From Phaeosaccion multiseriatum (Eukaryota; Protista; Ochrophyta, other classes): a DNA stretch of 64,000 nucleotides. The notes beneath the pieces are model-generated. The model searched no databases. It saw only the letters and a program-made list of their open reading frames with translations, and was not told the DNA's origin. Position 1 is the first letter of the stretch; the number at the start of each line of letters is the position of its first letter. Shown piece after piece: positions 2,162 through 64,000 of this stretch. The translations under genes were made by a program, and so were the position numbers. The stretch lies in contig OZ218950.1 in the NCBI GenBank assembly GCA_965112735.1, positions 2,356,001-2,420,000 on the forward strand. Reading direction: 5' to 3'.

Positions 2162-2162
2162 T

Positions 2163-2222
<60 letters not shown>
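2162..2222. repeat. (GAT)n microsatellite
   Basis: Direct reading. Confidence 0.95.
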
Positions 2223-2489: not shown

Positions 2490-2700
<211 letters not shown>

Positions 2701-3460: not shown

Positions 3461-3548
<88 letters not shown>

Positions 3549-6372: not shown

Positions 6373-6475
6373 TGAAACAAGAGGCAAAAAAAGGCGCTTA
6401 AGATAATTTATTTTCCCATGTACAGTATCTCTAAAACTAAGAGAAGGAAAATGCCGGGGCCTCGCTCCAGCAGTC

Positions 6476-9080
6476 TCACGACAGCTTGCTCTTGAGCAAT
6501 CCTGGCACTCCGCGGCCACCGTACTTGCCTCCATCGCGCAGCCTCTGCCCCATGAGCGGCGGGCTGTAGGCGAAGAGCTCGGCCCGACTGCCGACCGTGC
6601 CGTGGGTGACACGGGCGTAGGGGTGAAGGACTGCCCCTGCCTCCACTCTACAGGGTGACATGACCAGCAGCCCGGCAGTACTGTCTTCCCCAGCACCAGC
6701 AGCTCTTGGGCGAAGCACGTGACCAAAGACTTCACTACGCATGTCAAGTATGGCACCCGCCTCCAGGGTGAGGAAGTCAAAGTCAAACACATCGGCGGCC
6801 AACACCAATGCCTCGAGCGAGATATCCTTCGGCCGCGAGCACGACATTCGAACGTACAGATTGTATAGCCATGTACCGCGAAATACAGGCCACAGAACAT
6901 AAAGCAGGAAGAAGTGGCGCAGCCTGGTCAGAAGGCGGAAGTACTGCGTCCGCGCGCTCCGAGAAATATTCTGTGAGGACATGCACGCTCCCGTGATTGG
7001 GTCTGCGCCACGGCTGAAGTCACCGACGAGCAGCCACTTGGAAGCCACCAAGAGAAGAGTGAGGGCAAGGGCTCCTGCACACCCGCACACGGCCCCGTAC
7101 AGGGGCAGCATGGCCTCGAAGCTCATGCCCCGCTTCTTCCCCAAGCTTTGGTTTAGGTGCCTCCCCACCTCCACCACCACCACCAGAGTCCCAATATGGG
7201 TCGCCAGCATCAGCAGCGTGGCCCATGTCTCTCTGGCGACAAAGGCGGCCCAACGCTGGACGTCTCCGTTTGTGAGTGCGCCGGGTCCCGAGAGCGCAGC
7301 AGATGGGGCCGCATTCTCCCTCCCTCCACCCTCTACTGCGCCCTGCCCCCACGATGTCGACACGACTGTGTCCCCAGCTGCTACAGCGGTGAACATTTCA
7401 ACGCCTTGCTGTGCCGGAATGGCAGCACCAGGCTCCATGACGCACATGTACCCGAGTAGCGCTTCGTCCCCAACGGTGCAGGTCCCTCGCACACGTGTTG
7501 GCCCCACGGCGCTGCCTGCAGTGGCACTACCAACGCTGGTACTGGCTCTTCTCAGCGGCTCATCGGTAGCGAATGCGGCATACGACGCGAAAGAATCATT
7601 TCCTGTGGAAGTATTTGGGGTAGATGGAAAAGGAAAAAAGGAGAGAGAAGGGATGAGAGACAAGTTACATCTTCGCATCATTACACGGGTCTTCGCTCCA
7701 AGCAACGCAGAGCATGGCGGAGAGCCGTGGTGGCAAAGCGCGGTACCAAGCACCCCCCCCTCCTCCCACATACACTTCCCTAGACCTGTCCTCCCTTCTT
7801 ACCAAACGTAATGAGGTGGGCCGTCTCAGGATTGTACGCGCCATCACCAGAGTTGATAGCCCCCCTTCCCATGCGCACACCCAGGGCCTTGCCCCACCAG
7901 TCGAAGAGGCGCCAGCGGGCGAACACGAGCACGTACCCCGACACTTGGCTGTGAAGCTTGCCGAGGTACCATCGACGAAGCGCCCTTCCAAAGTTGTCGG
8001 TGTACACGCCGGGTCGAAGCAGGCAGCTCGGCGCAATGACCCACTTGAGCAGGACCAGGTACAGGGCAAGCGTCAGGAGGGCCCCATACACTCTAAACAC
8101 CGTGCTCATGACTCCTGCGTATCGAAAGTCTCTTGACACACCAAGGAAGGTGTACGCAACGGCGGGCATCCAGCTAAAGAAGGCCGTGAGCATGACAGAA
8201 GCCGTAATTAGCACCACACGCGCCCCGCCTTGCAGGAGTTGGAGGGCTTCCTTCGCCCATCCGTCACTGCCCTTTGCCAAGTGTCTCTCTCTGTCGGTCA
8301 TCACAGCTCGTCCACCCCCCTCCTCCTCGGCGCTGGGGCGGCTCTGCTTCCTCTGCGCCGGGTTGCCCTCCCACACACCATCACCAGCAGGAATGCGCGT
8401 CAGGGGGTATACAACGGACAGGCGAGCGACCCGTGTGCCCTCGCCCACCTTCACCCCACCGTACACCACAGCCCCGGCCTCCACCTCTGCGCCTGCACCC
8501 ACAACAATGCTGCGAAAGACCATGCTTGACGGCGTGAAGGAGCGAGGACACAGCGAGCCAGTCACCGAAGCGCCCGCCCCAATCGTGATGAGGTCAAACT
8601 CTCGAAGAAAGGTGGAGATGGAGCAGCGCCAGGAGACGTCGGCACCCAGAAGCTTGTAGAACAAAGTGATGCCCGGTGTTCCGAGGGTAACAAAGCCACC
8701 AACCACTTCCCACACATTGATGCACGCATTCACGTACCACCAGCGGTGATAGTACGATGCGTGGAGTGCGACGGTGCCCTCAAAATATGTCCCCACGACA
8801 AGCCACTTGACGCACAGGATGGAAGCGGAGTACGTCAGGAACCACAGGACGATGCTGAAGGAGACCAGAGGGCCCCAACCCACAACTCCACCTGGAGAGG
8901 CGTAAGATGACTCCGGATTGGCGAGATGACTCAAGTCCTTCCCTACCCACACCGAAGTCTCGATGTCAGAGTCCGTCTGGAGCCAGCGGAGGTAGCGGTA
9001 AGCTGGAATCATGCAAGCGAAGACCTGCGCCAAGAGTACCGCAATGAGTACCACTTGCGTCACCTTGAAGCCCACAGAGG
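6476..9080 (-). CDS. C-terminal membrane domain with three TM-pair plus hexapeptide (LbH) repeats; resembles the epsilon-poly-L-lysine synthetase C-terminus / NRPS terminal domain
   Basis: Three repeats each start after TM helices with KW(L/V)(V/I/L): VKWLVVG..YYHRWW..GTPG..YKLLGADV..DLITIGAGASV..VGAGAEVEAGAVV..WEGNPA; LKWVIAP..PGVY..RRWY..ALGVRMG; SKWLLVG..FRGTWLYNLY..FDFLTLEAGAILD. Stop TGA 6476-6478. Confidence 0.75.
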
Positions 9081-12000
9081 ACATCATCTTTGCGCACAGC
9101 AACGGCTCCTGCTCCTCTATCACCCCCTCGTGAGCCGCTGCCCCTTCGCCGTGGCTCTGCCTTCCCTTTCCCCCACCGGTAACGAGGTCGCGATGCCGCT
9201 GCTCCACCACCAGTGTGGCGAGGCCCTCTGCGGTGGGGTTCTGTAGCACCTCCGCCAGCGGCAGCTCCTCCTGCAGCTCAAACTGGTCCTGGAGCGTGTT
9301 GACCAGCTGCACCACGGCCAGAGAGTCCATACCCAACTCCAGGAAGGAGACAGTACTGTTGATACTCGTATCCGTACCAACAGCTTGGAGCTGGGCCTCG
9401 AGGTCCGCCTCCTTCAGAGGAGAGACAGCCCGCCCTTCTCTCATCTGCTGCTGCTGCTGCTGCTGCTGCCTCTCCATCTGGAAAATACGTGCAATCTCCA
9501 GGCAGGCATCCACCGCCTTCTCATGCACGTCTTCTTCGCTCTCGATCACCACTCGACCCCTGTGCGGAGAGTCATCTGGCTCATAGAGACCAGAGCACAT
9601 GAATACCAACGGCGGCCTTGCCGTTGTCTTCTTCCCTTCAGTTCTGCCTTCACCCGCACTTCCCCGCGGTACCGCCGCTGCCAATGCTCCCCAATTACTC
9701 AAGATAACGTGAGCATTCGTTCCGCCCACGCCATACGAGTGCACCGCGGCGATGAGCGTGCCTGCCCGAGCTCGCGCTCCACCTCCATCCTCGCTGCTGC
9801 TGCTGCCCTTCCAGTCCACGGGAGTCTTGAAAGTAGTGAGCTGCGAGCAGAGGGCGATGCGCGACTGCTCAATGTAGCCGAGCTCTGGGGACAAGTGCTC
9901 TCCATGCAGATTGGGCGGTGTCTGCTGGTGCTGAAGTACTAAAATGGCCTTAATGAGCTGCCCCAGTCCCGACGCACCCTCCATATGCCCCACACTGGTC
10001 TTCACCGCACCCACGCAGAGTGGATATATCCGCTCCCCGTTAACGCGTTGCTCCTCCTCAACGTAGACCCCGTGCAGAGCGCCCATCTCAATGCTGTCGC
10101 CCAGCACCGTGCCCGTCCCGTGTGCCTCCACGTATCCCACCTCACACGCTCGACGACTTGCGTCTCTCAATGCCCTCCTCATCACCTCTCGCTGTGCCAC
10201 GCCATTGGGGGCCGTCATCTGAGCGCTTTGCCCGTTGTGGTTGACTGCGCATCCTTCAATGACTGCCAGGATGTTGTCATGGTCCGCTTCCGCGTCCGAG
10301 AGACGCTTCAAAACGAGAGCTCCGCAGCCTTCCGCTCGGACATAACCATCAGCTCCGGCAGCAAAGGACGCCGTGCGACTGAGATGGATAGGAATCGATG
10401 GGGGGAAGACAAAAGGAAGGAATGAGAGAGAGAGTCGTCAAAAGCGGTGCCGCAACCAAGAAATCAATCATATGCGCCACAAAGCTTCCGCTTACCCTTT
10501 CTTAGAGAGCAGACCGGCCTTCCGGAGGGTAACAAAGCCTTGGGGGTGAAGAAGTAAGTTCACCCCCCCCACCACGGCTGTCTTGCACTTGCCCAGTCTG
10601 AGCTTGTCGCACGCGGCCTCCAGCGCAACAAGCGAGCTCGAGCACGCAGTGTCCAGCGTTAAGCTTGGCCCCACGAGTCCAAGCCGATTGCTGATGCGTC
10701 CGGCCACCAGAGAGGTACTCGTTCCCCCGAGGGTGTACGCATCAGGCTTCTGTGCACTGTCCGTCTGTACGGTCGCCCAGTCACTGCCGGATAGACCGAT
10801 GAAGACGCCCGTGTCTGAACCCTTCATGGCATACTTGTCCCAGTTCTTTGCCGTCATATTCCTCTCTTCCGGCGTCCCCTCGCGAAAAGCCTGCAAAGCC
10901 CGCCTCTGCAAGTGCTTCGTACGCTACTTGGAGCATCAACCGCTGATTCGGGTCCATGGTGCTGGCCTCGCCGGACGGAATGCCAAAGAGTTCATTATCG
11001 AAGCTCTGCAATTCATCATCCAAAAAGCCCCCGTGCAGCCCTAAAGTCTCCTCGCCCCACCCCTCGAAGGGGAGCCGAGTGGCACAGTCGACTCCATCGA
11101 CAAGATTCCCCCAGAAAGCGGCAGGGTTGTCTGCGCCGCCCGGGAAGCGACAAGCCATGCCCACCACCGCCAGCCCACGACGGCGGCGCTGACTCTCTGC
11201 CGTGAGCTCTCCTCGCGCTTGGTGGAGAGACTGCTCCTCTTCGAGCTCCGCACAGACTCGTTGCTGCGGTGCCCCTTCTTTGCTGCCATCATGCCCAGCA
11301 ACTCCGTGAGACAGTACTTCATCTTCGACCCATGCCGCCAATGCTGCCACCGTTGGATACGAGAAGAGTACGTCGCTGGTCACATTCACTCCAAAGCGAG
11401 ACTGCAGCCGGCCGCGCAGCTCCGCCGTTGCCAAAGAGTCAAGGCCTGCCTCCATCAGCGGGGTGGTGTCGGTCAGCTCTTCGGCACCCTCCCCAATCAG
11501 CTCCTTGGCTATATCCATCACCGCAAGGCTCACCATACGTTTCCGGTCTTCGGCGGACAGCCCCAGCAGCTCCTCGCGCACTTCATTGTTGAGTTCGGTG
11601 TTGCTGGACACGCCTGCTGCTGTTGAGACAAGCCCTGACAGCAGGAACGAGCCGCGGGACGCACCCAAGCTGTCTGCAAACTTGCTCCAGTCCATCCCAG
11701 GCAGAACGGCATAATCGCCCAAATGCGCTGACGACATCGCAGCGGCATCTAAGGCAGCCATGCCCAGCTCAGCTGACACCGTGCCCACACCAGCCAGCTC
11801 CAACTGTTTTTGAACGATATCGAGCTGGGCGGCCATACCAACGTCAGCCCACGGCCCCCACTGCAATGACGTCCCTGCGAGCCCGAGGTGTCGCCTGTGC
11901 CGCATCAGCCCGTCCACAGCCGCATTCGCTGCAGCGTAGTTGGCCTGTCCAGCGTTACCCAGTACTCCGGCCATGGATGTGAAGCAAAAGAAGAAGTCAA

Positions 12001-15000
12001 GGCCAGGAGCGCGCCCATCCTCCTTTGCCCAAGCCAACGAAAGCTCGTGCAAGTTCATCGCCCCCTGCACCTTCGGTCGGAAGACGTTCGTCACGCTCTC
12101 CACCGTTTGCTCTCCCAGGAGCTTATCATCCAGCACCCCGGCAGCATGCACCACACCGCGCACAGGGGGTAGCAGAGGCAGCACGCCCCCCAGGCAAGTC
12201 CGAAGTGCCTCAGCGTCAGCAACATCGCAAGTAGGAGTATGGATAGTCAGCTCCACATCGTTTCGAAGCTGCTGCCACTGCTGTCTCATGCTATTGGCGA
12301 CCTTCCTACTCCTTGACAACAGCACCAAGTGACGAGCGCCCCTCGACGCGAGGTGCTGGGCCGTCACGAGGCCGAGAGCCCCCAGACCGCCGCTGATGAC
12401 GTATGTGCCATCCGACACCACTGGCACACCATACGAGGGGTTGGTCAGCACCACCTTGCCGATGTGCTTCGCTTGGCTCATGTATACCATGGCCTTCTGA
12501 GTATCCTCCCTCATGTCAAAGGGTATGGTCGGCAAGGGCCTCACATTGCCAGACATGCAGTCTTTAGCAAGACGCTGCAGCCCGGCACTGATCCAGCCTG
12601 GCTCACCCGCCGAAAAGCCGACCTCGATAATGGCGTCCACAGCGACGAGGTTGTACCTCACATCGGGCCGGGCGGTGTGCATCTGCTCGTGACTCCATAC
12701 ACCTCTCTTCCCAATCTCCACGAATCTGCCTCCCTCTGTCAGCATGTCCAATGAGAAGGGAATGTAGTCTTCACTCAGTGAGTTGAGCACCACGTCCACC
12801 TTCATCTCACCCATGGACTGCTTGAATGCCTCTGCGTCTCTCGATGACGCAATGTGCTGCACTCCCAAGCTCCGGAGGAAGTCATGCTTCACAGCAGCAC
12901 CGGCAGTAGCGTACACGTCTGCGCCCACCCGCTGAGCATACTGCACGGCGGCAAGGCCCACACCGCCCGATGCGGCATGAATCAACACCTTCTCTCCAGC
13001 CTTAAGGTCGTGGAAGGCCTTCACTACCGTCAAGCACACCGTGGGAAGTGCAGCGGCCTGCTCGAAGCTCAGCCCGGCCGGCATCACGGCCAGACACACA
13101 TCACTCGTCGTCACATAACTGCGCAAACATCCTCCGTCCGCAAAACCAAACACTGCATCGCCGACACTGAAGCGCGAGCTTCCTCCCACACTGATCACCT
13201 GCCCGGCGAACTCGGAGCAAGGATCTCCAGGGTCGCCAGGGTACATGTCAAGCACATTCAGCACGTCTCGGAAGTTAAGGCCAACTGCCCTCACTGCCAC
13301 CTCTACGGAGCTGCCAGCTGGGTCAAGGGGCTGATGTTTGCCATGGTTCACATCATCGCGAAGGGCGAAAGCGTCGGCAATGCTGCCTCTTGCCTTTAAA
13401 TCAAGTGAGAAGGGAAGCTGCATGGGCTGACGTACAAGCTGAGGAGCCCAGCACTGTCCGTCGCGTACCCACACATCTTCTATGGCAGTAGGGAAGGCCA
13501 AGCCTAAGGCAAGCTCGCTGTCTTGGTCCTTCTTGCCGCTGAGGTCCACCACGCCAATCTGCAGGGAGGGGTGCTCCACTCTCGCAGTCCGCACCAGCCC
13601 AGTCACCCAGCTGTCACGCCAGTCCTCGCCGCTTTGGACGCCCCTCGTCAAGACCGTCAGCGGCACAGTCGACGTAGTGGACATGCTCCTGAGTAGCGAT
13701 AGCAGAGCGTAGACCGCTCGTGCTTGCGGGCTTCCTTCTGCTTCTTCTTCGCCAGCTCCGGGTACCAGCACGTACAACACGCGAGCCCACTCGTCCTGTC
13801 CAAGAAGAAGGGCACCATCGTCCCAGGAGGCGTCCACCCCCCCATATCGAGTGTGTATGTGCACGTTCTCCGGAACACAGTGCCGCACTGCAGCAATGAT
13901 TGAAATCTCTTCCTCCCTCTCGTCCTGTGGAATAACCACGAGCCACTTCTCAGCAGGGTCAGTATCACTACCAGGGGCCTCCTCCTGTGTAGACGACTCA
14001 GTGGTCTGCCATTTAAGCGTGTACATCACCCGACGAAGCGGATTGGGGCGCGCAAAGCCTCTCGCCCGCTGAGCCCGGAACCCACGCATCTCCAAAAGAA
14101 TCTGCTTGCTATCAAAGTCGGCAATCTTGATGTCAAACTTGATGCAGTTGCCCCCGGGCTCTACTTCACCGAGCGTCGTGTGCACCCAAACCGTCTCTCC
14201 CGTTATGGGGGCAGAAACGATCACCTCGTCAAAGCCAACAGGCAGGAATGGAGCTCCATCCCTCCCTCTCAGCAACTGGCGTGGGATTGCGTGCAAAAGT
14301 GAGTGAGTCGCATTGTCGAGCACCGCAGGGTGCAGAGCAAAGCCCGTCGCCTCCCAAGGCTCGCACAGGTCCGAGTCGAGAGCACGCACGACCGATAGCA
14401 CCTCTCCGTCATTGGCGAACATCTGTAAATTCCGCTCAAAGCGAGGGCCATAGTTGAAGTTGGCATCCGCCATGGCCTTGTACAGGCCATGGGCCAAGTC
14501 CAGAGTCCCTACCCGCCCCTTGATTCCCTCTATATCCAGCATTTCACGCGGCTCGGTTCGCTCCATGACAGACACGTGTTCCATCCTCGCGGTCGCTCCC
14601 TTGTCACCCTCAACGCCTCCGAAAAACTGCATGCTTCCATCGCTCGCGTGTAGAGCACTCAAGCCGTCACAGACAATAGTATTGCGGCTCTGCGCTTGGT
14701 CCGTGCCCGTGTGCTGGAAACCCTCAATCTCCAATGGAGCCACAAAGTTGGCTCCTTGCAGGACGACTTGCTGCTCCGCCCCGAGCCGTCTTCCTCCTAG
14801 AGCAGTGACAACACCCACTTCAATGTACGTCACCCCTGGAATGATCACTACGTTGTTGACTGCGTGGTCCTTGAGAAGGTCCTTGATGTGAGGCGAGAAG
14901 GGGCAAGAGAGCCGCATTCCGTCTCCCTCTTGGACCACCTCGCCGCTGGGCATGAATGCCAGTGGAGGCCTGAACCAACGAAACGCTTGGCGTGTGCGGT

Positions 15001-18000
15001 ACAATGCGCCACGCTCTGACTCGCTGTCCTTCTGAAGAGCATCGTTGAGACTGACGCCCTCTCTGTCGGCATGCGCGGCCGTACTCCCAGCTCTGGGACC
15101 GGATAGCACGGCGTGAGCATTGGTTCCGCCGGCACCGAAAGAGCTCACGGCAGCAACGAGCGCTCCTGTCCACCCGCCTTGACCCACGGGCTCCATGGTC
15201 ACAGGTAACGTCATAGGGACGCCCGCGAGCTCCAGCTCGGGGTTGATGTCCTTCAAATGCAGGTTCGGAGGGGCGACGCGGTGCTGCAGCACCAGTACGG
15301 TCTTGATGAGGCCTGCAATACCTGCTGCACCCTCCAGATGGCCGATATTGGCCTTTAGCGCACCTACCACCAAGGAATTTGCCTCGCTGCGGTCCGGTCC
15401 GCAGTACACTGCCTTAAGGGCGCTCATCTCGATGGGGTCTCCCAGCGCCGTTCCCGTGCCGTGCGCCTCCACGAAGCTCACCTCTGCGGGGTCCCTTCCC
15501 GCCTCTGCCAGAGCGGCAGACAGGAGCTGCTGCTGAGCAAGAGGACTGGGTGCCGTCAGACGAGCGCTGGCCCCATTGTGGTTGGCAGCACAGCCCTCGA
15601 TCACCGCTAGCACAGTGTCCCCGCTGGCCACAGCATCATCAAAGCGCTTCAGCACAATGGCACCACATCCTTCGCCTCTGACGTAACCATTTGCCGATGC
15701 GTCAAACGTCTTGCAGCGCCTGTCAGAAAGGTAGGTGAGGTGTGAGTGGGGTGCAACGGGAAGGTTTTGTTTAACTGTAGAGAAGACGCCCAAGAATGAG
15801 CTGCATGAGCAGCAATAGGATAAATGAATCAGAGTACGCTAGCGGCCAGTGCAACTTACCAGTCGGGGGAGAGGAAGGTCCCCGCAATCAAGGACTGAAA
15901 GGTGCTCTTCCCGAGCAGTAGGTTCACGCCACCGACCACCGCCGAGTCGCACTTGCCCAGGCGGAGGTTGCTGCAAGCAACGTCCAAAGCCACCAGGGAC
16001 GACGAGCATGCTGTCTGCAGCAACGCGCTGGGGCCGCAGAGACCCAGAGTGTAGGATACGCGATTGGCAATGTTCGAAGCCGTCAGGCCCATTCCACCGA
16101 AGGCGCTCTGAGCAGCGGCATCTCCTGCCACGAAGCCCCAGTCCGTGTCCGACAAGCCCACGAACACGCCGGTGTTGCTGCCCCGCAGGCTGCTCTTGCG
16201 GTGGCCCGCGCGATGGAGGGCCTCACAGGCCACCTCCAGCATGAGGCGTTGATTGGGGTCCATTACCTCTGCCTCGGCAGCACTGATACCAAAGAATGCA
16301 TTGTCGAACATCTCCACGCCCTCGATGAACCCTCCCTGTAGCTGCAGCTCGCCCGTCTTACTCTCCCACCTGTCGGGTGGCGCTGCCATAATGCAGTCTC
16401 TGCCCTCGCACATCATCGACCAGAACTGCTCCGGGCTATTGGCTCCACCGGGGAGGCGACACGCCATACTCACCACAGCGATGGGGGCTCGAGAGCTCGA
16501 GGACAAGTGCTGTCTTGTCAGCACCTCTTTACCCCCCTCTACATCATCCCGCACCTCAAGAATCTGGGCCTCGAGCCACGCGGCCATTGCAGACACTGAT
16601 GGATACGAGAAGAAGGCGCCATTCGAAACGGTGACACCACACCAGGCCTCGATTCGCTTGCGAAACTCTACGGACGCCATCGAATCGAGTCCGGCTTCCA
16701 TCAAGGGCATCGTTGCTGCCAAGGTGAAGTCCTCGCCAACGCACTCCACCACCATGTCCGTCAGGACTTGCTCGATCCTCTCCCGCCGTGCTGACTCCGG
16801 TAAGAGCAGGAGCTCCTCCTGCACCTCGGCGTTGATGCTGTAGCCCTTTGACGCCTCACCATTTTCTCCGCGGTCTGTCAATTGCCCGAGGAAATCGCTG
16901 TGCACAGGGGACAAGCTCGCTCGAAATTTGCCCCACCTCATGGCCGGCATGATGGCCACCTCCTGCACGTTGGCTTGCATTTGACTTGCAAGGACGGCAT
17001 CCAGAGCCTTCATACCCAGCGCCGATGAGATTAGGCCCACTCCGGCCATCTCCGCAGCTTTGGACACCATTTCAAGCCGCACCGCCATACCCACGTCGCC
17101 CCATGGGCCCCACTGAATGTTGGAACCAGGAAGGCCAAGCTGGCGTCGGCGGTACCGCATCAGCCCGTCCAAAGCAGCATTGGCCCCGGCATAGGCGCTC
17201 TGATTGGACAAGCCAAGCAAAGCGGAGGTCGATGAGTACGAGACGAAGAAGTCGATCTCGTCCCTGCCGCTCGCCACCCACTCAAGGCACAGCGCGTGGA
17301 GATTCCAACCCCCCTGGATCTTGGCGGCAAAGACATTTCGCACGTTCTCTTCCGTCTCGCCCGACAACATTCCCTTTTCGCCCGTCACACCCGCTGCGTG
17401 AATCACACCCCGAACATGAGGCAGCCCCATCAAGGCCGTTGCTACAGCCTCTCGAAGCTGGCCCATATATGACACATCGCAGGCCACGGCCACAGCGGTG
17501 ACACTCTCCATGCTCTGCAGGGCCTGCCACAGCTCTGAAACTTCTTCCGCCGCCTGGCCGCTTCGAGATAGGAGGAGCAGGTACCGAGCACCCTGGGAGA
17601 CCAAGTGATTCGCCGTCGCCAGACCCAGCCCCCCCAGGCCACCGCTGATCAGGTAGGTCCCATCCTCCCTGTACGCGAAGCGATCGACTCCTGCCGATGT
17701 CAGATGGAGTGTGCTGGGCACCAGCCTCGGAGCGAGGATCTTACACCCTCGAACCAGCAGGTCCACGCCTCGCGCTCCGTCGTGAGCTTCTGCAGCCAGC
17801 GTCACAGCCTGGGAGACAGTTTGGGCTTTCATCTCCTCTACTCTAGGTTGAGCACCCTCAGACTGTGGAGACATGGCACACTCAAGGTCCACGTGGTTCA
17901 CGGAGAGGTCGCCCCTCTCCAGGCGTATGCTTCTCACCAGTCCCACTGCCCAGCTATCCTGCCAACCAGCACCGCTGTACACACCCGTTGTCACCACGGT

Positions 18001-54000: not shown

Positions 54001-57000
54001 AATGCTACGGAAGCGCTGCACCAGGCGCTTCATCTCCACATGCGCCTCCTCCTCATTGGCTGTGACGATATCAACAAGCCCCAAGTTGAGTGCGCTTGCC
54101 GCAGTGATGACGTCAGCAGTGCACATTAGCCTCGTCACTTGCGCTTTCGTCATGCGCAGCTGAGCGGACACCGACACCAAGCCGGGCAGCCCCCCTCGGC
54201 GGATCTCTGGGAAGGCAAAGGAGGCGTTCTCGTTATCCGCAATGGACACGGTCGAGCAGCAGGGGAAGAGCATGCCCCCTCCTCTGCACGCGCCGTTCAC
54301 CACCACGATGATCGGAGAAGGGTACGCGTTGAGCACCTCCTGGAGCCGTCGGAAGCTCTCTAGCGTTTCCGCCATAGCGTCGGTACCAAAGCCCCCCGCA
54401 CCCTCGAGATCCGCTCCCAGGCAGAACGGCTCGGTGGCGCTTCCTCCGCTGAAGACAATCACGCCCTTTGCGCGCTTGATCTCGGCCAGAAGTCGCTGGG
54501 TACTCTCCACTGTCAGCTTGGGCGGCACAGCAATGCTCATATAAGCGAGAGTGGGTGGAAGTGTGGACAGAGGGGCCGCCTTCTCCACTCGCTCAGGCAC
54601 TGCAGTTGGGCGCAGCGATTGCTGTCGTGAGCGCTGATACCCGTTTCCAGCGTAGCTCTCTCGAGCACGTCCGTCCGCAGTGATCACGTTGACAACATCG
54701 CTCGCTGATGCACCGTCCAGAAGCTCGCTCTGGGACAGTGTCACACCATACTCCCCCCCCACCCAGTTCACCAGCTCCAGCGACGCTAGGGAGTCCAGCC
54801 CGAGCTCGGGCAGCTTGACCATTGGGTCCACCTCATGCACCTCCGCTCCCAACAGGGCGGCGACTTGGGCCATCACAGCGGACTCCACGGCAGAATGCGA
54901 GGCGGGTTCATTGGCTGCAACACTGGCGGGAGAGCTGACGCCTTGCCGGGGTGACTTTGCGACTGTCGAAAGCTTGGAAGGTGCAGGCACAGTAGCAATG
55001 CCCTCTCCTCCGCTTGAGCAGATCGTGTTGACAACATCGCCCGTTGATGCACCGTCCAGAAGCTCGCTCTGAGACAGTGTCACACCATACTCCTCCTCCA
55101 CCCAGTTCACCAGCTCCAGCGCCGCTAGGGAGTCCAGCCCAAGCTCGGGCAGCTTGACCATTGGGTCCACCTCATGCACCTCCGCTCCCAACAGGGCGGC
55201 AACTTGGGCCATCACAGCGGACTCCACGGCAGAACGCGAGGCGGGTTCATTGGCTGCAACACTGGCGGGAGAGCTGACGCCTTGCCGGGGTGACTTCACG
55301 ACTGTCAAAAGCTTGGAAGGTGCAGGCACAGTAGCAATGCCCTCTCCTCCGCTTGAGCAGATCATGTTGACAACATCGCTCGCTGATGCACCGTCCAGAA
55401 GCTCGCTCTGAGACAGTGTCAAACCATACTCCTCCCCCACCCAGTTCACCAGCTCCAGCGCCGCCAGGGAGTCCAGCCCGAGCTCGGGCAGGCTGGCCGT
55501 TGGGTCCACCTCATGCACCTCCGCTCCCAACAGGGCGGCAACTTGGGCCACCACAGTGGGCTGGACTACAGAAGCAAGCCTTGCGTGTCCCTCCGAGAAA
55601 ACTCTCCGATGCTGCTCTTTCTCCTCATCCAATCTGGTTTCCAATAACTGTTGCGCTCCTGTGTGCTGGGGCTGCTGGCGTGCTTGAGGCGTCTCTCTCT
55701 CAGAGATAGGTGTGTGTGTCTGCAAACGCCCTTCCTCATCCACGAGATCGTACAAGCTCTCATTGGAGCTGGCCTTGCGATATGCGTCCAAGAGCGGCCG
55801 ATCGATGCTCATCTCTGCAGGTATCTGTTGGTTATACAGGAGCAGACGCCGAAGGTGTGCAAAGACGAGCTCAACCTCAACCCCGCTGAGCCCCGTGCCC
55901 GACGTGTCCGAATGCCGCTGCCGCAATTGCCTCACGTCGTAGAGGCCAGCCCCGAGTACTAACGGAAGGTTGACGACCATGGCAGGGAGTCCCATGGCCC
56001 GGCGGTGCGTCGCCAGCGCTGCAAGAGAGGCGTGTGCCCCCACATCGTCGGCCTGCTTGGTGCTGCCGTGAGCAGCTGCCAGAGACGAGAAGAGTACAAA
56101 GTAGCGCACTCGGTCTCGGTGCTCAGGGGCAGCAGAGAGGCGGTGAAGATTCTCGGCCTCTACCGCCTTCACATCTGACATTTGAAACGTCGCTTCTTCC
56201 CCACGGGCAGGTGTGGTGGTCTCGTGGCCTGAGGACAAGTGGAAAACACCCGTGAGCGGCGGGTGCGAACATGCCTCCTTGAAGAGCGCGGCAAGGGCCC
56301 CCGCGTCTGCCACATCACACTTTCGCACGAGCAGATGAGCGCCGGTCTTGCGGAGATTCTCCACTCGAAGCTGTATGGAGCGGGAGAGACTGCCCTCTGG
56401 CCTTGACACCAGCAGGACGACATGTCGTGCCCCGTTGGTCACCATCCACTCCACGAGGGAGATTCCCATCCCACTCGCTCCTCCCGCCACCACCTGTACA
56501 GCCGTAGGAGAGATACGAGACAAGAGGGAGAGAGAGATGGAGCGAAGGCAGGCCGTCAGATGACCGCACAGTTGAAAGGTGAGAGAGAGCAAATGATCGA
56601 CTGCTCCACTCTGACGGAAGGCGTGGTGAGTGCTACCCTTGACGTCCTCATCTCTGATCTTACCAGCGTTTCGGCACTGTGGAAGATTTGAGACGAGCGG
56701 GCTGTCCAGTCGGCGCTGAGCTGCGGGACGAAGCGTGCCTGCGTCATGGGTGGGGAGGATGGGACATGGTGGGACATGATGACAGCGTTGAGGTAAAGCT
56801 CATACAGCATAATCGCCGGAACGCCGGATACAGACAAACACAACAGAGGAGGACAAAAAGGGAGGTATACGCACATTGCGAGTTGGAGTGCTCTTCTCGT
56901 CCCCCTCGGGCGCCGTCATGACGATGGCGAGCTTGCCTGTGTGCGACCCCATGCGCATCAGCTTGAAGGCCTCCGTCGCATCGGCTGCGGCGAAGGCAGT

Positions 57001-60000
57001 CGTGGGCACAGGAGAGAGCTTCCCCTCCTCCAGCAGCTGCTGACAGTCTGACACGAGCTGCTGCACCACCTCCGGGTGAGACTCCGTCAGCAGGTCAATG
57101 TGCACACTCAAGAGAGACACGTTTTCCTTGAGGCCTCCCATGCGCACCGTGTTATCGCTTAGAATATCGCGCTTGCCAATCTCCACGAAGCGCCCGAGCG
57201 GAGCCATGGCCTTCAAGCTCTGCTCCATGCCCTCCCCGGCGATGCTGTTCAGCACCACGTCCACCCCCCTACCTCCCGTCACGCCTCGAATCGCATCGAC
57301 GAACTTGGAGGGTGCGCGGGAATCAATCACGTGCTCTACACCATAGCGCTCTCGCAGCAGCTCGCGCTTTGCTACGGATCCGGCCGAGACGATGATGGTG
57401 GCGCCGGTGTGCTTGGCAATCTGGACCGCAGCCAGCCCCACACCGCCCGCTGCGGAGTGCACGAGCACAGTGTCGGAGGGCTGCAGCTGGGCCTTCACGA
57501 TGAGTGCGTAGTAGGCCGTCACCGTCACACCGTAGAAGCCAGAAGCATCCACCATACTAAGCTTGGCCGGCTTGGGCCGCAGACTCCACACGGGGGCGAT
57601 GGCCTCTGTGCCCATCAGCGAGTAGCGCGCGTCACTGGAGGCTGCGGTCATGGTCATGCTCACCACCTCGTCGCCTACCGAGTACATGCAGTGCTGTTGG
57701 GTGCTCCCCTCTCCGCCTGCTCCCACTTCGATGACACGTCCTGCGGCCTCCAATCCCAGCACGGGGTGGAACCCAGGCAACATGCTCATGGCCAGCAGCA
57801 AGTCCTTGAAGTGCAGCGAAACGGCGTGGATCTCCAGACGCACCTCGCCCTCCTGCAAGGGCCAGCGAGGAAGCACGTGCCAGCGCAGGCTGGACAGCTG
57901 CCCGGGGCGGTCCACTTGCAGCTGGAAGGCGGGCGCGGCACGTTCCTCCGGTGTGACGGCCTGCTCTTTCGGCAGCAGCTGCAGTCGAGGCACACGCCAC
58001 GCGTGAGTAGTGGGAGCAGCGGTGCCTGGGAGGAGATGCCACTCCTTGTCTGCGGGTAACCTCTCCATCCGCATGTAGGGAAGGACGTGTTGCCACCCGA
58101 CCGAGAGCTGCATGTCGGGAGGAAGCAGAAAGCAGTAGATTGGTAGAAAGGGGTTCTCGCAGCGCGCAGCACGAGTCAATCCCAGCATGAGAGATGGGGA
58201 AGCTCTTCGCTCCTCCTGTGCCTTCTCCTGCCGCGTGTGCGGTGCCTGCACGACCAGCCACACGAGGGCTTTCAGAGTTTGCCCAACACGGCTTGCCTCC
58301 ACGCACTTGAGCAGCAGCTCGGCAGCCTGCTCGACGGACTGTCGTGCGTCAACCACGACATCAGCCTCAGCCAGGTCAGCGCACAGCACGCCGATGCTTT
58401 CCTCCGTCTCCTTGTCCATCCCTAGCACGCACACGCGACGCGACGGCACGGCTGCCGCTGCTGCTGATGCTGGCAGAGGCGTCTCCGGAGACTCTACGGG
58501 GGCTGCGAAGACAGTGTGGTACACACTCAGCTTCAGCCATGCATTCGGACTCTGAGGTAGCTGCATGAGCACCAGTCCGTCCACTCTCCAATACACCTCT
58601 CCTCGGGGGGACATGGTCACCACGTCGGCGGTGATGCTGGTGGCAGTCCTGTCGATGAGCTTTGTATGGCACAGCAATTGCGGCCCCACAGCCTCTGTTA
58701 GCACAACAAGGCGTCGTAGCTTGGTGGGCACAAACGCTGCGACGCCGTCGAGCAAACCCGCCATTTGGAAGCAGCTTTCCAGCGCCATGGGGTCGAGAGC
58801 GAACGGCGCCACTCCTTGCACCCGTACGCGCCCGACCATCTCGCCGTCGCCCACCTTTGCCTCAACAATGTTCCGGAAGGCAGGGCCGAAGCGGCTGCCC
58901 GTGTGCCGCTCCAGCTCCTCGTACAGCAGACTGACATCCACCGTGTCCGGGCAAGCCTTCCATAGCACGTCTACGCCGTTATGTACATGCGCAGGGCTCT
59001 CGCTCTCGCTGTCGCTCACGAGCTTCGCTGTCATGTAGGGCAGCTCCTTCTTGTCGGGCTTGCACAGGGAGACGCTGCCACTCCTGCCACTACCAGACCC
59101 ATCGTCGCACACCACGAGAGCTTGAGCCTCGGACTGCTTCACTGGGAAGAAGCGAACGAACTCCGCGTCGCAAATGGTCCTCTCACCACCACCCTCTTCA
59201 CCCCCGGCCCCTGACGTGCTGCAGCAGCGCGTGTCATAGAGAATTGCCAGCATGACGGCCGCTGGCAACACCACTCCACCATTGACTGCGTGATCTGCAA
59301 GGTACGGGTGCTGCTCCACCGACAGCCTCACTCCTCCTCTTTCCTCCCAAGCGGTCTGTGGGGGAAGAGCTTTGACAAGGCCCTTTCCCCTCTTCTTCCT
59401 CTTGCCACTACTCATGATATCGTACCAAGGAAACGGTCTGCGCGTCCGATACAGCTCCACGTGCTCCGGGCCAATCACTTTACTCAGGGCCGCTCGAAAC
59501 GCCTCGTTGGAGTTTTGTCCTCTCTTTAGAGTAGAGACCCACACCAGCCCCTCGCGACGCTCGCACTTGGCTCCCATGCTGCTCAGCACAGGGTTGGGAC
59601 CCACCTCAACGATGCTCAGGTCAGCCCCCCTCCCGTCTCCCATCCAGTGCTCCACCAGCGTGTGGATGCCTTCTGCGAACAGCACCGGCAACAGCATGTG
59701 CTGCACCCAATACGTCGCCTGCGTCACCTCCTCCCCTCTCACCACCTCACCCGTCACGTTGGACACCAGGGGGATGCGTGGGGCGTTGAGTGACACCTCA
59801 CTTAGAGCCTCCTCCAGAGCACGTACAGCAGGCTGCATCAGGGGCGAGTGGAAGGCGTGCGACACCTCCAGGGCCTTGCAGCTCACCCCATCTGCCGTCA
59901 GCTTCTCCACCACCTTGCCCACAGCAATGCGCGCTCCAGAGATCACGCTCGCGCTCGGTCCATTTGACGACGCCAGCACCACCTCGCCTGCCCCCCCCGC

Positions 60001-63000
60001 AGCGTCGATGCTTGCCAAAGTCGCCTCCTTGCCTGCCCTCACTGCGAGCATCACTCCCTCGCCCTCGGGGCAGGCCTGCATGGCGGCTCCTCTCTTGGCG
60101 GACAGCATCAGCCCGTCCTCCAGCGACATGACGCCGGCCACGCACGCCGCCACTACCTCGCCCAGGCTGTGGCCCATCACCATGGAAGGCTCCACGCCCT
60201 CCGACTTCCACAGCTCACACAGGGCGTACTCCAGCACAAACAGGCACGGCTGGCAGTAACGCGTCTCCTTCAGCAGCGCTTGTGCACTTTCCTCTCCCTC
60301 AGCTGTAGGGTACAGGAGCTCCACCACAGACTTGTCCAGCCAGGCCTGGTCCTGCAGGAGGCCATCGCACCGACGAACAGCTTCACGAAAGACCTCACGC
60401 TGTTGAGGCACCGAAAGGGAGACACGCAAACCAGAGACAAGAAGAGAGAAAAGCAGATGAGATAGAGGGCAGGTGGCCGAGGTGATGCGATGCGACGGAG
60501 AAAACAAGAGCAGCATAGATACATAGAAAAAGCGAGCAAGCGAACTCACCTCATCGTAGAGCTCCTTGCCCATGCCGGGGTACTGCGAGCCTTGCCCCGT
60601 GAAGAGAAAGGCGACCGGAGATGTGGCGACCTCCGTCTTCCTCCTCGTCGCTGTCTTCGAACCCTCCCTCTCCACTCTCGGCCCAGCGCTGCTCAGCACC
60701 ACGTGGGCGTTGGTGCCTCCTGCTCCGAACGAGCTTACTCCTGCGTACAAGGGCTCGCTGCTGTCATTGGGGTGTCCCTCGCCACTCAAGGGGGTTAGTC
60801 TGGACGACGGGAAGGCCACCGCAAATCCATCAACGCCCAGCTGAGGATTGAGCGTGCCGAGGTGCAGATTGCCTGGAACAGCTCTGTGCTGAAGAGCCAT
60901 GACGGTCTTGATGACTCCCGCGATGCCTGCGGCGCCCTCCAAGTGACCAATGTTGGTCTTGACCGCTCCCACCATGAGTGGGAAAGAGCTCTCCCGCCCT
61001 TCTCCGTAGGCGGCTTTGAGAGCGCTCATCTCGATGGGGTCGCCAAGAGCCGTGCCGGTGCCGTGTGCCTCCACGAAGTGAACTTCCCTGCCCGCTACAC
61101 CCGCCTCCTCCAAGGCTGCCTGCATCAGCGTCTGCTGCGCGTCTGGACTGGGTGCTGTGAGCCGCATAGAGCGCCCATTGTGGTTCACGGAGCTTCCCCG
61201 CACGACGGCCAGGATGTTGTCTCCGTTGCGCTCCGCGTCGTCAAGCCGCTTCAGCACAACGGCGCCGCAGCCCTCTCCTCGGACGTAGCCGTTGGCCGAT
61301 GCGTCGAACGTCTTGCAACGCCTGAGAAAGGCATGGGAATGGCGGGGTTGGGAGCGGGGGAGAGGGATTGAGCTTCATGGTCTGCCCATCAACACACTAC
61401 AACTCTACTACTTCTGCACGAACTCGATGCTCTCCAAGGCAAGCTCCCCCATTCGGCCGTACGTACCAGTCCTTGGACAAAAAACCTCCCTTGTCGAGCT
61501 GTTCGAAGGAACGGGAGCCGAGCAGCAGGTTCACTCCTCCGACAACCGCAGCATCGCACGTGCCGAAGCGAAGGTAGCGACAAGCCGTGTCCAAGGCAAC
61601 GAGCGAGGAAGAGCAAAGCGTATCAACCGATATGCTTGGGCCTCGCAAGCCCAGTGCGTAGGACAGGCGATTTGCAGGGCAGCCCGCTGACTCACCCATC
61701 ATGGAGTAAGCCTTAACGGCCACGTCTTTGTTCAGCGCGGCCCAGTCGCCGTGCTGCATGGAGCCCACGAACACTCCAGTGTTGCTGTTGCGCAGCGCGG
61801 CCATAGAGAAGCCTGCCTCGTGCAGCGCCTCGTAGCCGACCTCGAGCATGATGCGCTGAGTGGGGTCCATGGCCTCGGCCTCGACCACGGAGATGCCAAA
61901 CGTGGCGTTGTCAAACATCTCCACGCCGCCGATGAAGCCTCCGTGCCACTCCTTCGCCGCACCAGGGAGTCTTCCCGGGGGCATGGCGGTGATACAGTCC
62001 CTTCCCTCCAGCAGCATGGACCAGAAAGCGTCGGGACTGTCTGCGCCTCCAGGGAAGCGGCACGCCATGCTCACTATTGCAAGCGGGGCAGAAGCGTCGC
62101 CCCCCCCTTGAGGCGATGGCATCATCCTGGGCAGGCGCAGGCTGCTCGCACATCCCTCCATAAGCGCCGAGCCCAACCACTCCGCCAAGGCCGCCACGGT
62201 GGGGTGGGCGAAGAGGGCGGCACTGCTAACGGGAATGTCCGTGAGCAGGTGCAGACGCTGCCTCAGCTCCATGAGCGCCAACGAATCCATGCCAGCCTCC
62301 ATGAGAGGCTTGTCCATGTCGATGCCGACAGAGCCTGCCGTGCTAGAGAGGGCGATGTCGGAGATGACGGATCGAAGCCTCTCTTGGCGTTCAGCTGGAC
62401 TGACACCGCGGAGCTCTGCTGCCAAGGAGTTTCCGGCCGCCGATGTCGGTGGGGCGGGCAGCAGCTTGAAGGCCTTTCTGCTCGTGAACGGGGAGGCTCT
62501 GACGTTGGTCTTCTCCGCTTGTGATATAGCCGTCCCCTCCAGGATGACGTGGGCGTTGACACCACCAAACCCAAAGGAGTTTACAGCTGCAAAAGAAGCA
62601 GAAGTAGCCACAGCGAGCAGAAGGGTATGGTGAGAACGGGTTCAGCAATTTACCATCATACTATAGCTCATACTCTCTAAAGTCCTCTTTGACTTGTCCC
62701 GAGAAGAAGCGAGTGAGTGAGTAAGAGTGGGTGAGTGAGTTATTGGGTGGGTGAGTGAGTGAGTGAGTGAGTGAGTGAGGGAGTGAGTAAGTGAGTGAGT
62801 GATTGAGGGAGTGAGGGAGAGAAGGAGGGAGGGAGTGCGTGAGTGCGGGAGTGAGTAAGTGATTGAGTGAGTGAGTGCGTGAGTGAGCGAGTGGGTGAGT
62901 GAGTGGGTGAGTGAGTGAGTGAGTGATCACAGGAAACGTTTTTGAGTAAGGGCCCCAACGCACCTCCGATTCGGGTGGAGATGGGGGTCATGCGTCCGGG

Positions 63001-63473
63001 GATGGGCAGCAGAGCGCTGTTGCCCTCCGTTTTCAGTGCAGGGTTCAGCGTGGACAAGTTGAGGTTGGGAGGCGCTTGGACATGCCTGAGCACCAGCACC
63101 GTCTTGATGAGCCCCGCAATGCCTGCCGCAGCCTCCGCGTGACCAAGGTTGGTCTTGATCGCTCCAACGACGAGACGGCGGGCTGTCGCCAGGTCGTGGT
63201 CTCCGTAGGTGCCGGCGATGGAAGCCCACTCCGTGCGGTCCCCGAGCGGCGTGCCCGTGCCGTGCGCCTCGATGAAGCTCACGTCGGACAGAGCGATGCC
63301 CGCCTCTGCTACGGAGTCCAAGACCGCGGCCTTCTGTGCCGCTTCGTTGGGGGCGGTGAGGGTCGTGCCGAGGCCCGTGTGATTGATGCAGGAGCCTCGA
63401 ATCACCGCCAATATGTTGTCTTGGGCCTCTATGGCGTCTTCGAGGCGCTTTAGCACGACGGCGCCACAGCCCT
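6476..63473 (-). CDS. Giant multimodular type I polyketide synthase, 5'-partial, about 18,000 aa in window, 11 KS / 4 AT / 13 ACP. Exons: 63473-62964, 62586-61467, 61321-60550, 60399-56875, 56738-56664, 56493-53560, 53430-53065, 52952-52401, 52244-51671, 51522-48453, 48285-43213, 43061-38004, 37852-32795, 32643-26548, 26398-20288, 20131-15860, 15719-10496 (contains +1 discontinuity near 10885), 10378-7803, 7602-6476
   Basis: Consecutive large minus-strand ORFs stop and restart in the middle of KS domains (..FLSxDG/W | RCKTFDAxANGYVRGEG..) across short GT-AG introns. Hand-checked exon lengths give consistent phases. Motifs: KS DTACSSS/HGTGT/KTNIGHLE, AT GHSLG/HAFH, DH HxVxxxxxxP, ER HAASGGVG, KR GGLGALG/YAAAN, ACP GLDS. 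Confidence 0.85.
9200..11170 (-). CDS. Module K: KS-ACP (KS has a +1 frame discontinuity near 10885)
   Basis: LAVVGMACRFPGG, DTACSSS, EAHGTGT, KTSVGHMEG; ACP ELGMDSLAVVQL; poly-Gln linker. Confidence 0.75.
11320..16480 (-). CDS. Module J: KS-DH-ER-KR-ACP (no AT)
   Basis: KS QTACSSS/HGTGT/GHLE, short linker, then DH DHAVNNVVIIP; ER and KR nearly the same as in G/H. Confidence 0.85.
16560..20910 (-). CDS. Module I: KS-AT-KR-ACP (hydroxyl-leaving module)
   Basis: AT followed directly by the KR structural and catalytic parts (GGLGGLG, HAAGVTGEK, SAYAGAN); no DH or ER motifs; ACP GLDSM. Confidence 0.85.
18470..31970. repeat. Tandem repeat of about 2.1 copies, about 6260-bp unit (cis-AT module plus intron)
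   Basis: ORF ends 20284 vs 26544 (offset 6260); similar introns 20132-20287 and 26399-26547; the AT and KS half of module I match those of H. Confidence 0.9.
20990..27170 (-). CDS. Module H: KS-AT-DH-ER-KR-ACP
   Basis: Near-identical to module G from AT to the next KS, at a 6260-bp offset. Confidence 0.85.
27250..33425 (-). CDS. Module G: KS-AT-DH-ER-KR-ACP
   Basis: FLFTGQGSQY, GHSLG, HAFH, DHAVNNMVIIP, HPAVLD, HAASGGVG, VLDD, YAAAN, GLDS. Confidence 0.85.
33497..38634 (-). CDS. Module F: KS-DH-ER-KR-ACP (no AT)
   Basis: Same motifs as modules D and E; 5209-bp tandem copy. Confidence 0.85.
38706..43843 (-). CDS. Module E: KS-DH-ER-KR-ACP (no AT)
   Basis: Same motifs as module D; 5209-bp tandem copy. 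Confidence 0.85.
43915..49075 (-). CDS. Module D: KS-DH-ER-KR-ACP (no AT)
   Basis: KS followed by a short linker and DH EHAVGGVVLMP..HPAVLD; ER LIHAASGGVG; KR HAAGVLDD with duplicated NYAAA; ACP GLDSM. Confidence 0.85.
49160..50960 (-). CDS. Module C: divergent, intronless KS (second His replaced by Asn) plus ACP
   Basis: IAIVGMACRFPGG, DMACSSS, EAHGLGS, KPNMGNLEGAGG, poly-Ser insert; ACP EAGLDSLALVEMR. Confidence 0.8.
51095..52625 (-). CDS. HMG-CoA synthase domain fused inside the PKS
   Basis: VGIHAMELYVP, GKFTVGLGQ, GRLE|VGTESSVDYSKSIKTYLM, NACYGGTAAL (catalytic Cys), FAFH (catalytic His), YSYGSG. The last HMGS exon runs in frame into the next KS. Confidence 0.9.
53065..54540 (-). CDS. 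Tandem crotonase (enoyl-CoA hydratase) domains, ECH1-like then ECH2-like, inside the PKS
   Basis: ECH1: FCLGADL, VNGACRGGG, FAFPEIRRG. ECH2: FNAIS, FCTGVN, HGK|VLGGGLA, SDFRIA, SVYNHGNLPRGVCPG. In frame with the ACP triplet. Confidence 0.85.
54680..55555. repeat. 360-bp period repeat encoding the ACP triplet
   Basis: VAALLGAEVHEVDP..LGLDSL..ELVNWV..YG.TLSQSELLDGAS occurs three times, with a duplicated linker. Confidence 0.9.
54680..62100 (-). CDS. Module B: KS-AT-DH-ER-KR(degenerate)-ACP-ACP-ACP
   Basis: KS DTLCSSS/EAHGTGT/GHLE; AT GHSLG..HAFH; DH LADHAVNGGVVLP; ER VHSAAGGVG; KR VVAGGASGMG with GSTKQADDVGAH in place of GQANYAAAN; three LGLDSLA(A/S)LEL ACPs. Confidence 0.85.
62160..63473 (-). 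CDS. Module A (partial): C-terminal half of KS plus ACP
   Basis: EGCGAVVLKRL, EAHGTGT, KTNLGHAEAAAG, AVNSFGFGGVNAH (joined across intron 62587-62963); ACP LMEAGMDSLALMELR. Confidence 0.8.
62710..62925. repeat. (GAGT)n degenerate microsatellite in PKS intron
   Basis: Direct reading. Confidence 0.9.
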
Positions 63474-63609
63474 CTGCTCGCAGCCGCAGGGCACACGCAG
63501 CAAATGGAGGTGACTGGAGGGTGAGCTAGGGGGTGGTCGAGCCGTGCTCATCAGGCTCATAAAAAAAGGACAATCTCAGACCCAAAGAAACACTCCCTGC
63601 TCATCCTGC

Positions 63610-63890
63610 ACTTATCTCCTCCCTTATTTCCCCCCCTTCCTCTCCCTTTCCCTTTCTCCCTGTCTGTGCCCCTGCTCCTCTCCATCTCTCCCTGTCTCGC
63701 CCTCTCCCTCTCTCTCTCCCGCTACTACCTCTCTCGCTCTCCCGATCTTTCTCTCCATCTCCCCTTCTCTCCCTCCCTCTCTCATTCCCTCTCCCTCTCC
63801 CTCTCCCGCTCCTGCTCCCTCTCCCCCTGGCGCCTCTCTCCTTCTCCCCGCCTCCGCCTTTCCGTCTCCCTCTCCCTCTCCCTCTCACCG
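63610..63890. repeat. CT-rich low-complexity tract, probably intronic
   Basis: Direct reading; lies upstream of the first visible PKS exon. Confidence 0.8.
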
Positions 63891-64000
63891 CCCTCCTTGC
63901 GGAGCTGGAAAGGGCCGTGAATCAGAGCGCTGCGGCAAGCAAGCTCTACCACATGCCAATCTCATTCTCGTCCTTCTAGTCTTCTATACAGTCTCGCAGG

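Follow-up and report, generated by a model that had tools for sequence, protein, structure and literature searches.

A giant, intron-split modular polyketide synthase gene of the ochrophyte alga Phaeosaccion multiseriatum with a putative cis-fused beta-branching cassette and a Pls/PosA-type terminal domain

Giant algal polyketide synthases (PKSs) have become newly tractable through PKZILLA-1 and PKZILLA-2, and almost nothing is known of such enzymes beyond haptophytes and dinoflagellates. The two PKZILLAs of the haptophyte Prymnesium parvum are entirely trans-acyltransferase (trans-AT) systems (Fallon et al., bioRxiv 10.1101/2024.01.29.577497). PKZILLA-1 starts with a loading module made of an ANL ligase and an acyl carrier protein (ACP), PKZILLA-2 ends in ST-TE, and the word "HMGS" (3-hydroxy-3-methylglutaryl synthase) is absent from the text of the preprint describing them (bioRxiv 10.1101/2024.01.29.577497). 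A brown-algal genome survey treats type III PKSs only. On the side of chain release, the epsilon-poly-L-lysine synthetase Pls and the delta-poly-L-ornithine synthetase PosA are iterative polymerases using a free acceptor chain, with six transmembrane (TM) helices in three pairs and soluble segments as their defining layout (PMC10522769). Our literature searches retrieved no description of a PKS that ends in a Pls-type domain, of a eukaryotic HMGS cassette in cis, of HMGS in algal or dinoflagellate PKSs, or of an oomycete fusion of HMGS with a ketosynthase (KS). Here, we analyzed a 64,000-nucleotide (nt) stretch of the genome of the ochrophyte Phaeosaccion multiseriatum (assembly GCA_965112735.1, contig OZ218950.1, positions 2,356,001 to 2,420,000), hereafter called the window, in which coordinates are counted from its first nucleotide. 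We propose, as a moderately probable reading, that a single nuclear gene on its minus strand (6479..63477 within the window) codes for a modular type I PKS of the highly reducing kind, whose product would be a long and mostly saturated lipid-like chain released at a membrane.

All large open reading frames (ORFs) from 6.4 to 63.5 kb of the window, whose G+C content is ~60%, are encoded on the minus strand, and the Pfam scan of stop-free pieces gave strong matches to PKS domains, with E values down to 1e-127. Most breaks between these ORFs cut through domains, and canonical introns are predicted to span them. Once 16 introns were taken out, each of them GT-AG, 112 to 377 nt long and summing to 2,647 nt, the 17 exons formed 54,352 nt encoding 18,117 residues with zero stops, down to a TGA stop codon at 6479-6481 and an AATAAA-like signal ~70 to 80 nt downstream of it. 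The introns differ in base composition from the exons (C+T, 0.60 versus 0.46; G+C, 0.52 versus 0.61). Nine KS domains are interrupted at one common codon, in phase 2 (D(W/G)^RCKTFD, where the caret marks the intron), the last KS reading KKG^RTASF; such a shared position would be expected if modules were duplicated along with their introns. The first KS is interrupted at its C-terminal end (IG^A-VNSFGFGG), the second crotonase domain, ECH-2, within its crotonase motif (PVVCVSHGK^VLGGG, intron 53559-53431), and the HMGS twice, at GRLE^VGTES and at a second site with an uncertain donor. The terminal domain is split by intron 7802-7603, and its homologues, e.g., the Ectocarpus protein, align straight across. 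At five KS intron donors (61466, 48452, 26547, 20287, and 15859), the junction codon is Trp (TG^G) versus the usual KS Gly (DGRCK), which is found in the triplicated modules and in the last KS; the Trp codon may be real or may reflect a shifted splice site.

Three introns of the model are best guesses (56874-56677, 53064-52953, and 51670-51523), and the junctions between the enoylreductase ER1 and the ketoreductase KR1 (~56.8 kb) and between ECH-2 and HMGS (~53.0 kb) fall in linkers, where several adjacent genes or transcripts could be mistaken for one giant gene. We regard such a partition as highly improbable: the gaps at these two places are 112 to 198 nt long with GT-AG ends, too short to hold a terminator, a promoter, and a start, the remaining breaks all split domains, and no ORF piece begins with a plausible N terminus. 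The first exon of the single gene opens partway through a KS at ~63477, and from there to 64000 the DNA is GA-rich and noncoding; the N terminus therefore lies outside the window, with the 5' end beyond 64000. Directly upstream of this exon, ~400 nt (63530-63950) are GA-rich and of low complexity on the sense strand, the introns elsewhere being CT-rich, and this stretch represents a long first intron or, alternatively, a boundary region. A previous sequence-only reading of this DNA had announced a modular PKS of more than 18,000 residues lacking its N terminus, with ORFs that break inside domains and splice in phase, and both statements hold. Its continuous frame of ~54 kb stands after splicing, apart from a break of one base inside the last KS, near 10841, and its figure of 18 introns has to be lowered to 16 complete introns plus one cut at the 5' edge, the break at 10841 not being an intron. 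Altogether, the spliced model confirmed that an intron-split giant PKS gene, with a predicted product of more than 18,000 residues, is real.

Pfam resolved the domain order, from the N-terminal side, as [KS C-terminal half]-ACP; KS-AT-DH-ER-KR-ACP-ACP-ACP-ECH-ECH-HMGS; KS-ACP; three times KS-DH-ER-KR-ACP; twice KS-AT-DH-ER-KR-ACP; KS-AT-KR-ACP; KS-DH-ER-KR-ACP; and KS-ACP (DH, dehydratase; ECH, crotonase-fold domain), the last ACP being followed by ~825 residues that Pfam barely recognizes. This is the architecture that the sequence-only reading had described, including its minimum of 11 KS modules, its fused ACP3-ECH-ECH-HMGS cassette, found with both Pfam and NCBIfam models, and its mixture of cis-AT and AT-less modules. 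Module 0 consists of the C-terminal half of KS0 (63055..63411; Ketoacyl-synt_C, E value of 9e-36), the N-terminal half lying outside the window, and of an ACP (62174..62323; PP-binding, 1.8e-10). The first part of module 1 (56926..62086, from Pfam and motifs) comprises KS1, AT1, a divergent DH1, and ER1. Module 2, i.e., KS2 and an ACP, occupies 49169..50965 within the ORF that carries the end of HMGS. Modules 3 to 5 (32795..48285) are three tandem AT-less KS-DH-ER-KR-ACP modules built on a 5,209-nt repeat, and modules 6 and 7 (20288..32643) are two KS-AT-DH-ER-KR-ACP modules forming a ~6.27-kb repeat with 95% identity. Pfam placed module 8 (KS-AT-KR-ACP) at 15860..20131, the end of this exon being the N-terminal part of KS9, and the remainder of the AT-less module 9 (DH-ER-KR-ACP after KS9) at 10496..15719, together with the N-terminal part of KS10 and its frame break. 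Module 10 is made of the C-terminal part of KS10 and the last ACP (9208..10378), with no reductive domains.

KS domains thus number 11, of which 10 are complete and 1 is truncated by the edge of the window. The KS alignment shows the catalytic Cys in 10 of them and both His in all except KS2, whose triad is Cys-His-Asn; the others, including KS1 and KS10, have Cys-His-His, and the truncated KS0 keeps both His. All four ATs, AT1 among them, carry GHSLG/HAFH and are of malonyl type. Seven modules have no AT, and no free-standing AT gene was found within the window, so that by domain assignment cis-AT and AT-less modules are mixed in one line. There are 14 DSL/DSM carrier sites in total, including those of the ACP triplet. 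The DH and ER motifs are present, DH1 being divergent, and in the KR alignment every KR is intact apart from KR1, which lacks the catalytic Tyr and Asn.

The most unusual part of the line is the stretch from KR1 to HMGS. KR1 (55957..56499) reads ADDVGAH versus ANYAAAN in the other KRs and is predicted to be inactive, which would keep the beta-keto group. It is followed by three tandem ACPs (54580..55602; three PP-binding matches, DNA repeats 95% identical), then by ECH-1 (54013..54474; ECH_1, 3e-32), ECH-2 (53092..53802; Pfam, NCBIfam, and sequence), and HMGS in three exons (51101..52628). A single uninterrupted ORF runs from KR1 to the N-terminal part of ECH-2 and another from the HMGS C terminus to the ACP of module 2; most of the cis fusion is therefore read directly from ORFs. 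The exon pieces of HMGS match TIGR01833 with 69.7, 167.7, and 78.6 bits, summing to 316 bits versus a cutoff of 286.2, and this eukaryotic model is the best one. HMGS matches plant HMGS at 5e-42, human HMGCS at 1e-38, and PksG at 1.4e-5, and its catalytic Glu, Cys, and His are retained; by these comparisons it is of the eukaryotic mevalonate type and not of the PksG/CurD/MupH clade. In a PDB sequence search, the triple ACPs were closer to mitochondrial/type II ACPs than to those of PKSs. They carry a Trp nine residues past the Ser that is absent in the other ACPs; it may be the Trp "flag" of branching ACPs, an identification on which our proposal does not draw. ECH-1 retains one of the two hydratase Glu (in FPE), and ECH-2 retains neither, a state that we take to be that of decarboxylases. 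The best NCBIfam models for both domains are generic crotonases, with lower matches to PRK07112 (3.7e-19) and PRK07110 (3.7e-5). A dead KR1, tandem ACPs, HMGS, and two crotonases together therefore argue for the logic of a beta-branching module. Moreover, its eukaryotic-type HMGS, its mitochondrial-like ACPs, and its ECHs, both generic crotonases, suggest that the cassette was put together from parts of eukaryotic primary metabolism, independently of the bacterial HMG synthase (HCS) cassette.

KS2 (49706-50965), downstream of HMGS, combines its FabH-like Cys-His-Asn triad with a poly-Ser/Gly insert of ~25 residues and could serve in chain transfer only or be a condensing KS of an unusual kind. 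When the HMGS-KS2 piece was used as query in a homologue search, bacterial KS matches dominated (33 to 42% identity) and none of them carried HMGS; the search with the HMGS part only gave no matches, a blank that means little given the length window of this search. The ECH-ECH query had a metagenome PKS without HMGS as its sole match. On this contig (L001:1-7990), three abutting ORFs encode DH, KR-ECH, and hydrolase-ACP-KS, with 29% identity to ECH-ECH; with a single ECH and no HMGS, it was rejected as a counterpart of the cassette. A cluster in the ESM Atlas groups ~110 eukaryotic, mostly oomycete, proteins of ~800 residues with the N and C domains of HMGS plus a ketoacyl-synt domain, and HMGS-KS fusions may thus be older in stramenopiles.

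At the other end of the protein, the last ACP (ACP10, 9208-9369) is directly followed by a terminal domain of 825 residues, encoded by two exons (6479..9120) and running to the stop at 6479 as the last domain. Its first exon matches TIGR02353 of NCBIfam with an E value of 8.4e-17 and its second one weakly (5e-3), short of the 423 bits set as the curated cutoff for the whole domain; the domain is therefore a distant TIGR02353 member. Hydropathy predicts six membrane helices as three pairs, with a soluble segment after each pair, and three left-handed beta-helix segments were recognized, the third unit being judged from its sequence only. The AlphaFold2 (AF2) model of the first 468 residues (the first two-thirds of the domain; pLDDT, 82.6) consists of helices and beta-helix, and its best Swiss-Prot match is PosA (residues 598-1007; E value of 9.6e-14; TM score of 0.57). 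These data bear out the membrane-bound, Pls-like terminus put forward by the sequence-only reading. The soluble part of the model matches CoA-dependent hexapeptide O-acetyltransferases, and a PDB sequence search with the terminal domain found no Pls structure, only hexapeptide-repeat proteins.

An exhaustive HMMER search with the terminal domain returned 934 relatives. The best are eukaryotic, at ~30% identity (26 to 33%; E values of 6e-61 to 1e-19), and built as AMP-ligase(/FAAL)-carrier-terminal domain in Ectocarpus, Amorphochlora, Bigelowiella, Picozoa, Salpingoeca, and Chrysophaeum; others are a 4,380-residue PKS of Stygiella and a 2,920-residue ligase-PKS. The same terminal domain is fused to PKS modules in predicted proteins of Stygiella and in one metagenome protein. 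Named bacterial Pls/PosA nonribosomal peptide synthetases (NRPSs) were matched at ~1e-27, the identity to bacterial members being ~19 to 22%. Since the nearest relatives are AMP-ligase/FAAL-carrier-terminal proteins and PKSs, the terminal domain is always found fused to acyl-activating enzymes. It would most plausibly transfer the ACP-bound chain to an amine or a hydroxyl at the membrane.

We propose the following route for chain assembly, in which the domain order, catalytic residues, and intron structure are seen in the sequence and the chemistry follows from a colinear reading. Module 1 would extend the chain with malonate and leave the beta-keto group unreduced because KR1 lacks the catalytic Tyr. 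The in-cis HMGS would then add an acetyl unit onto this ketone, the chain being held on one of the three tandem ACPs, before dehydration by ECH-1, decarboxylation by ECH-2, and perhaps saturation by the ER of module 1, resulting in a beta-methyl branch. KS2 would pass on or extend the chain, to which five fully reducing modules would add ten saturated carbons; the three AT-less modules among these five would be loaded by a neighboring or separate AT. Module 8 would leave a hydroxyl, module 9 would achieve full reduction, and module 10 would yield a beta-keto thioester on the last ACP. Finally, the terminal domain, as a predicted pseudo-trimer in which hexapeptide-acyltransferase-like beta-helices sit on six membrane helices, would transfer the acyl chain from this ACP to an amine or hydroxyl of a membrane acceptor, replacing hydrolysis by a thioesterase.

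Several points weigh against this proposal, the first of which concern the gene itself. In the last KS (KS10), a one-base change shifts frame 0 to frame 1 near 10841 (window 10839-10843), and the spliced model reads through this break as a single X. An intron across 10841 was rejected in favor of a one-base indel, as no GT-AG pair of credible length retains both flanking KS motifs and only short GC-AG pairs do so. Modules 4 and 5 (32795-43061), tandem copies of 5,209 nt, differ by one codon in 1,685; this near-identity points to duplication in the very recent past or to gene conversion, or possibly to a duplication (collapsed or expanded) introduced by the assembly. Four public sequencing runs, searched with the region 5200-11199, cover introns and intergenic DNA evenly without splice joints and therefore are DNA, and the run search restricted to RNA-Seq libraries listed none. 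The break in KS10 and the lack of transcripts would suit a decaying or non-expressed pseudogene copy within a paralogous family, which we nevertheless hold to be very unlikely. The break is just one in 54 kb, and contigs from three of the four DNA runs, which derive from the same sample, are one base shorter exactly at 10841, with six substitutions nearby. It therefore stems from allelic variation or from an error of the assembly, and two haplotypes differ at 10839-10843. Catalytic residues are intact throughout, and dN/dS between duplicated modules is 0.27 for copy 1 versus copy 2 of modules 3 to 5 and 0.32 for modules 6 and 7; the differences are mostly synonymous and thus indicate purifying selection.

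Other reservations concern the branching cassette. About 75 profile positions of HMGS (234-308) are unmatched, and its activity is putative; the ECH domains are not specifically PksH/PksI-like; and the role of the DH and ER beside the dead KR1 in module 1 is a guess. The window contains neither a KS with an active-site Ser (decarboxylating KS) nor an extra free donor ACP; the acetyl donor may be acetyl-CoA, or a donor ACP and a decarboxylating KS may lie elsewhere. HMGS-ECH-ECH could make no beta-branch at all, with HMGS or HMGS-KS2 in another role (e.g., a Claisen-type condensation that yields a carboxymethyl side chain) or HMGS inactivated by its internal deletion. Such an outcome would agree with the missing profile positions, the generic crotonases, the unusual triad of KS2, and, as a lead only, the oomycete HMGS plus ketoacyl-synt cluster, which hints at an older HMGS-KS unit. 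Still, HMGS keeps its Glu, Cys, and His intact, and the context is a textbook one for branching, with its dead KR, three tandem ACPs, and two crotonases, the second without both hydratase Glu; we therefore judge the loss of branching doubtful, and beta-branching is retained in our proposal.

Regarding release, transfer may be single or iterative, the acceptor is a putative amine or hydroxyl, and colinearity is assumed. The terminal domain could be a true polymerase, the hydroxyl or another nucleophile of a released chain attacking the ACP-bound chain repeatedly, so that hydroxy-oxo fatty acids are linked into an oligo- or polyester, e.g., wall- or cuticle-like material. The build of six TM helices and three beta-helices is shared with Pls and PosA, these characterized members of the family polymerize iteratively with a free acceptor chain (PMC10522769), and module 8 would place a hydroxyl in the chain. 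Polymerization seems unlikely to us, as the closest relatives form a eukaryotic group fused to fatty-acyl-type ligases or PKSs (26 to 33% identity) and are not the bacterial polymerases, no acceptor can be read from the sequence, and one transfer to a head group fits the data equally well. With the same low expectation, one may imagine that membrane-anchored "lipid polymerase" megasynthases evolved in stramenopile algae, in which a branched hydroxy-oxo chain, made with an independently invented cassette of mevalonate HMGS, crotonases, and mitochondrial ACP, would, during export, be joined by the Pls-type end to other such chains as a polyester or to an acceptor in the wall or membrane. If true, this would open a route to resistant algal biopolymers or new lipid classes.

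Apparently, a eukaryote has here rebuilt beta-branching with enzymes of its own primary metabolism and joined them in cis, which would give a compact, self-contained module of interest for PKS engineering. The Pls/PosA domain, known only as a polyamino-acid polymerase, would act here as a polyketide release step, pointing to a broader role in eukaryotic membrane acyl transfer or export. Moreover, the predicted long, saturated, and hydroxylated product suggests that a major lipid or polymer of the relatives of brown algae is still to be found. Our analysis thus suggests that a cis branching unit of eukaryotic housekeeping-type enzymes and a Pls-type end instead of a thioesterase are what is new in this gene, a combination that we found in no paper.

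Downstream of the gene, no convincing gene was found in window 1-6400. Just past the stop, positions 5600-5800 and 6000-6400 have a depth 10 to 100 times that of their surroundings in the DNA runs, with loose ends sharing a TAGGCC-rich motif, and therefore belong to a high-copy repeat or mobile element. The 1-6400 region is dense in microsatellites, with CCCT/GGGA runs and with (GT)n at 2480-2700 and (CA)n at 3459-3550 forming a 92-nt inverted pair, and a weak MusI-like membrane match lies at 4528-4968 (minus strand).

Compared with known systems, the terminal domain resembles those of Pls and PosA in its C-terminal, post-carrier position, its six TM helices, and its three beta-helix segments (PMC10522769). 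Pls and PosA are single A-T, NRPS-like enzymes polymerizing a diamino acid, whereas the donor in Phaeosaccion would be a long polyketide on an ACP and polymerization is putative. Its nearest relatives, likewise post-carrier, are the domains of the eukaryotic ligase-carrier-Pls-type proteins, such as CBJ30872 of Ectocarpus, annotated "long-chain acyl-CoA synthetase," and those of Amorphochlora, Bigelowiella, Picozoa, Salpingoeca, and Chrysophaeum, and the Stygiella PKS and the metagenome protein share a Pls-type domain placed after PKS modules. These relatives differ in being predicted proteins of much smaller size, with no HMGS cassette in those scanned. The claim of the sequence-only reading that the combination matches no characterized system is upheld insofar as we found no paper describing it, and the Stygiella and metagenome fusions make it less singular than was thought.

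The cassette, for its part, shares with the bacterial HCS cassettes (CurA-F of curacin/jamaicamide, PksG/H/I of bacillaene, and mupirocin) an unreduced beta-ketone, tandem ACPs, HMGS, and two crotonase-fold enzymes. The bacterial HMGS and ECH1 are trans-acting members of dedicated clades, whereas the Phaeosaccion cassette is one predicted polypeptide with an HMGS of the TIGR01833 type, mitochondrial-like ACPs, and generic ECHs, and with no donor ACP or decarboxylating KS in the window. Finally, the PKZILLAs are alike in being giant single-gene algal modular PKSs with large exons, few short GT-AG introns, recent module duplication, and AT-less modules. An identity with PKZILLA-3 was rejected given the ochrophyte host, to which the Ectocarpus-like best matches also point, and the different architecture. 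In contrast to the PKZILLAs, the Phaeosaccion gene combines four cis ATs, an HMGS cassette in cis, mostly full reduction, and a Pls-type end in an ochrophyte host.

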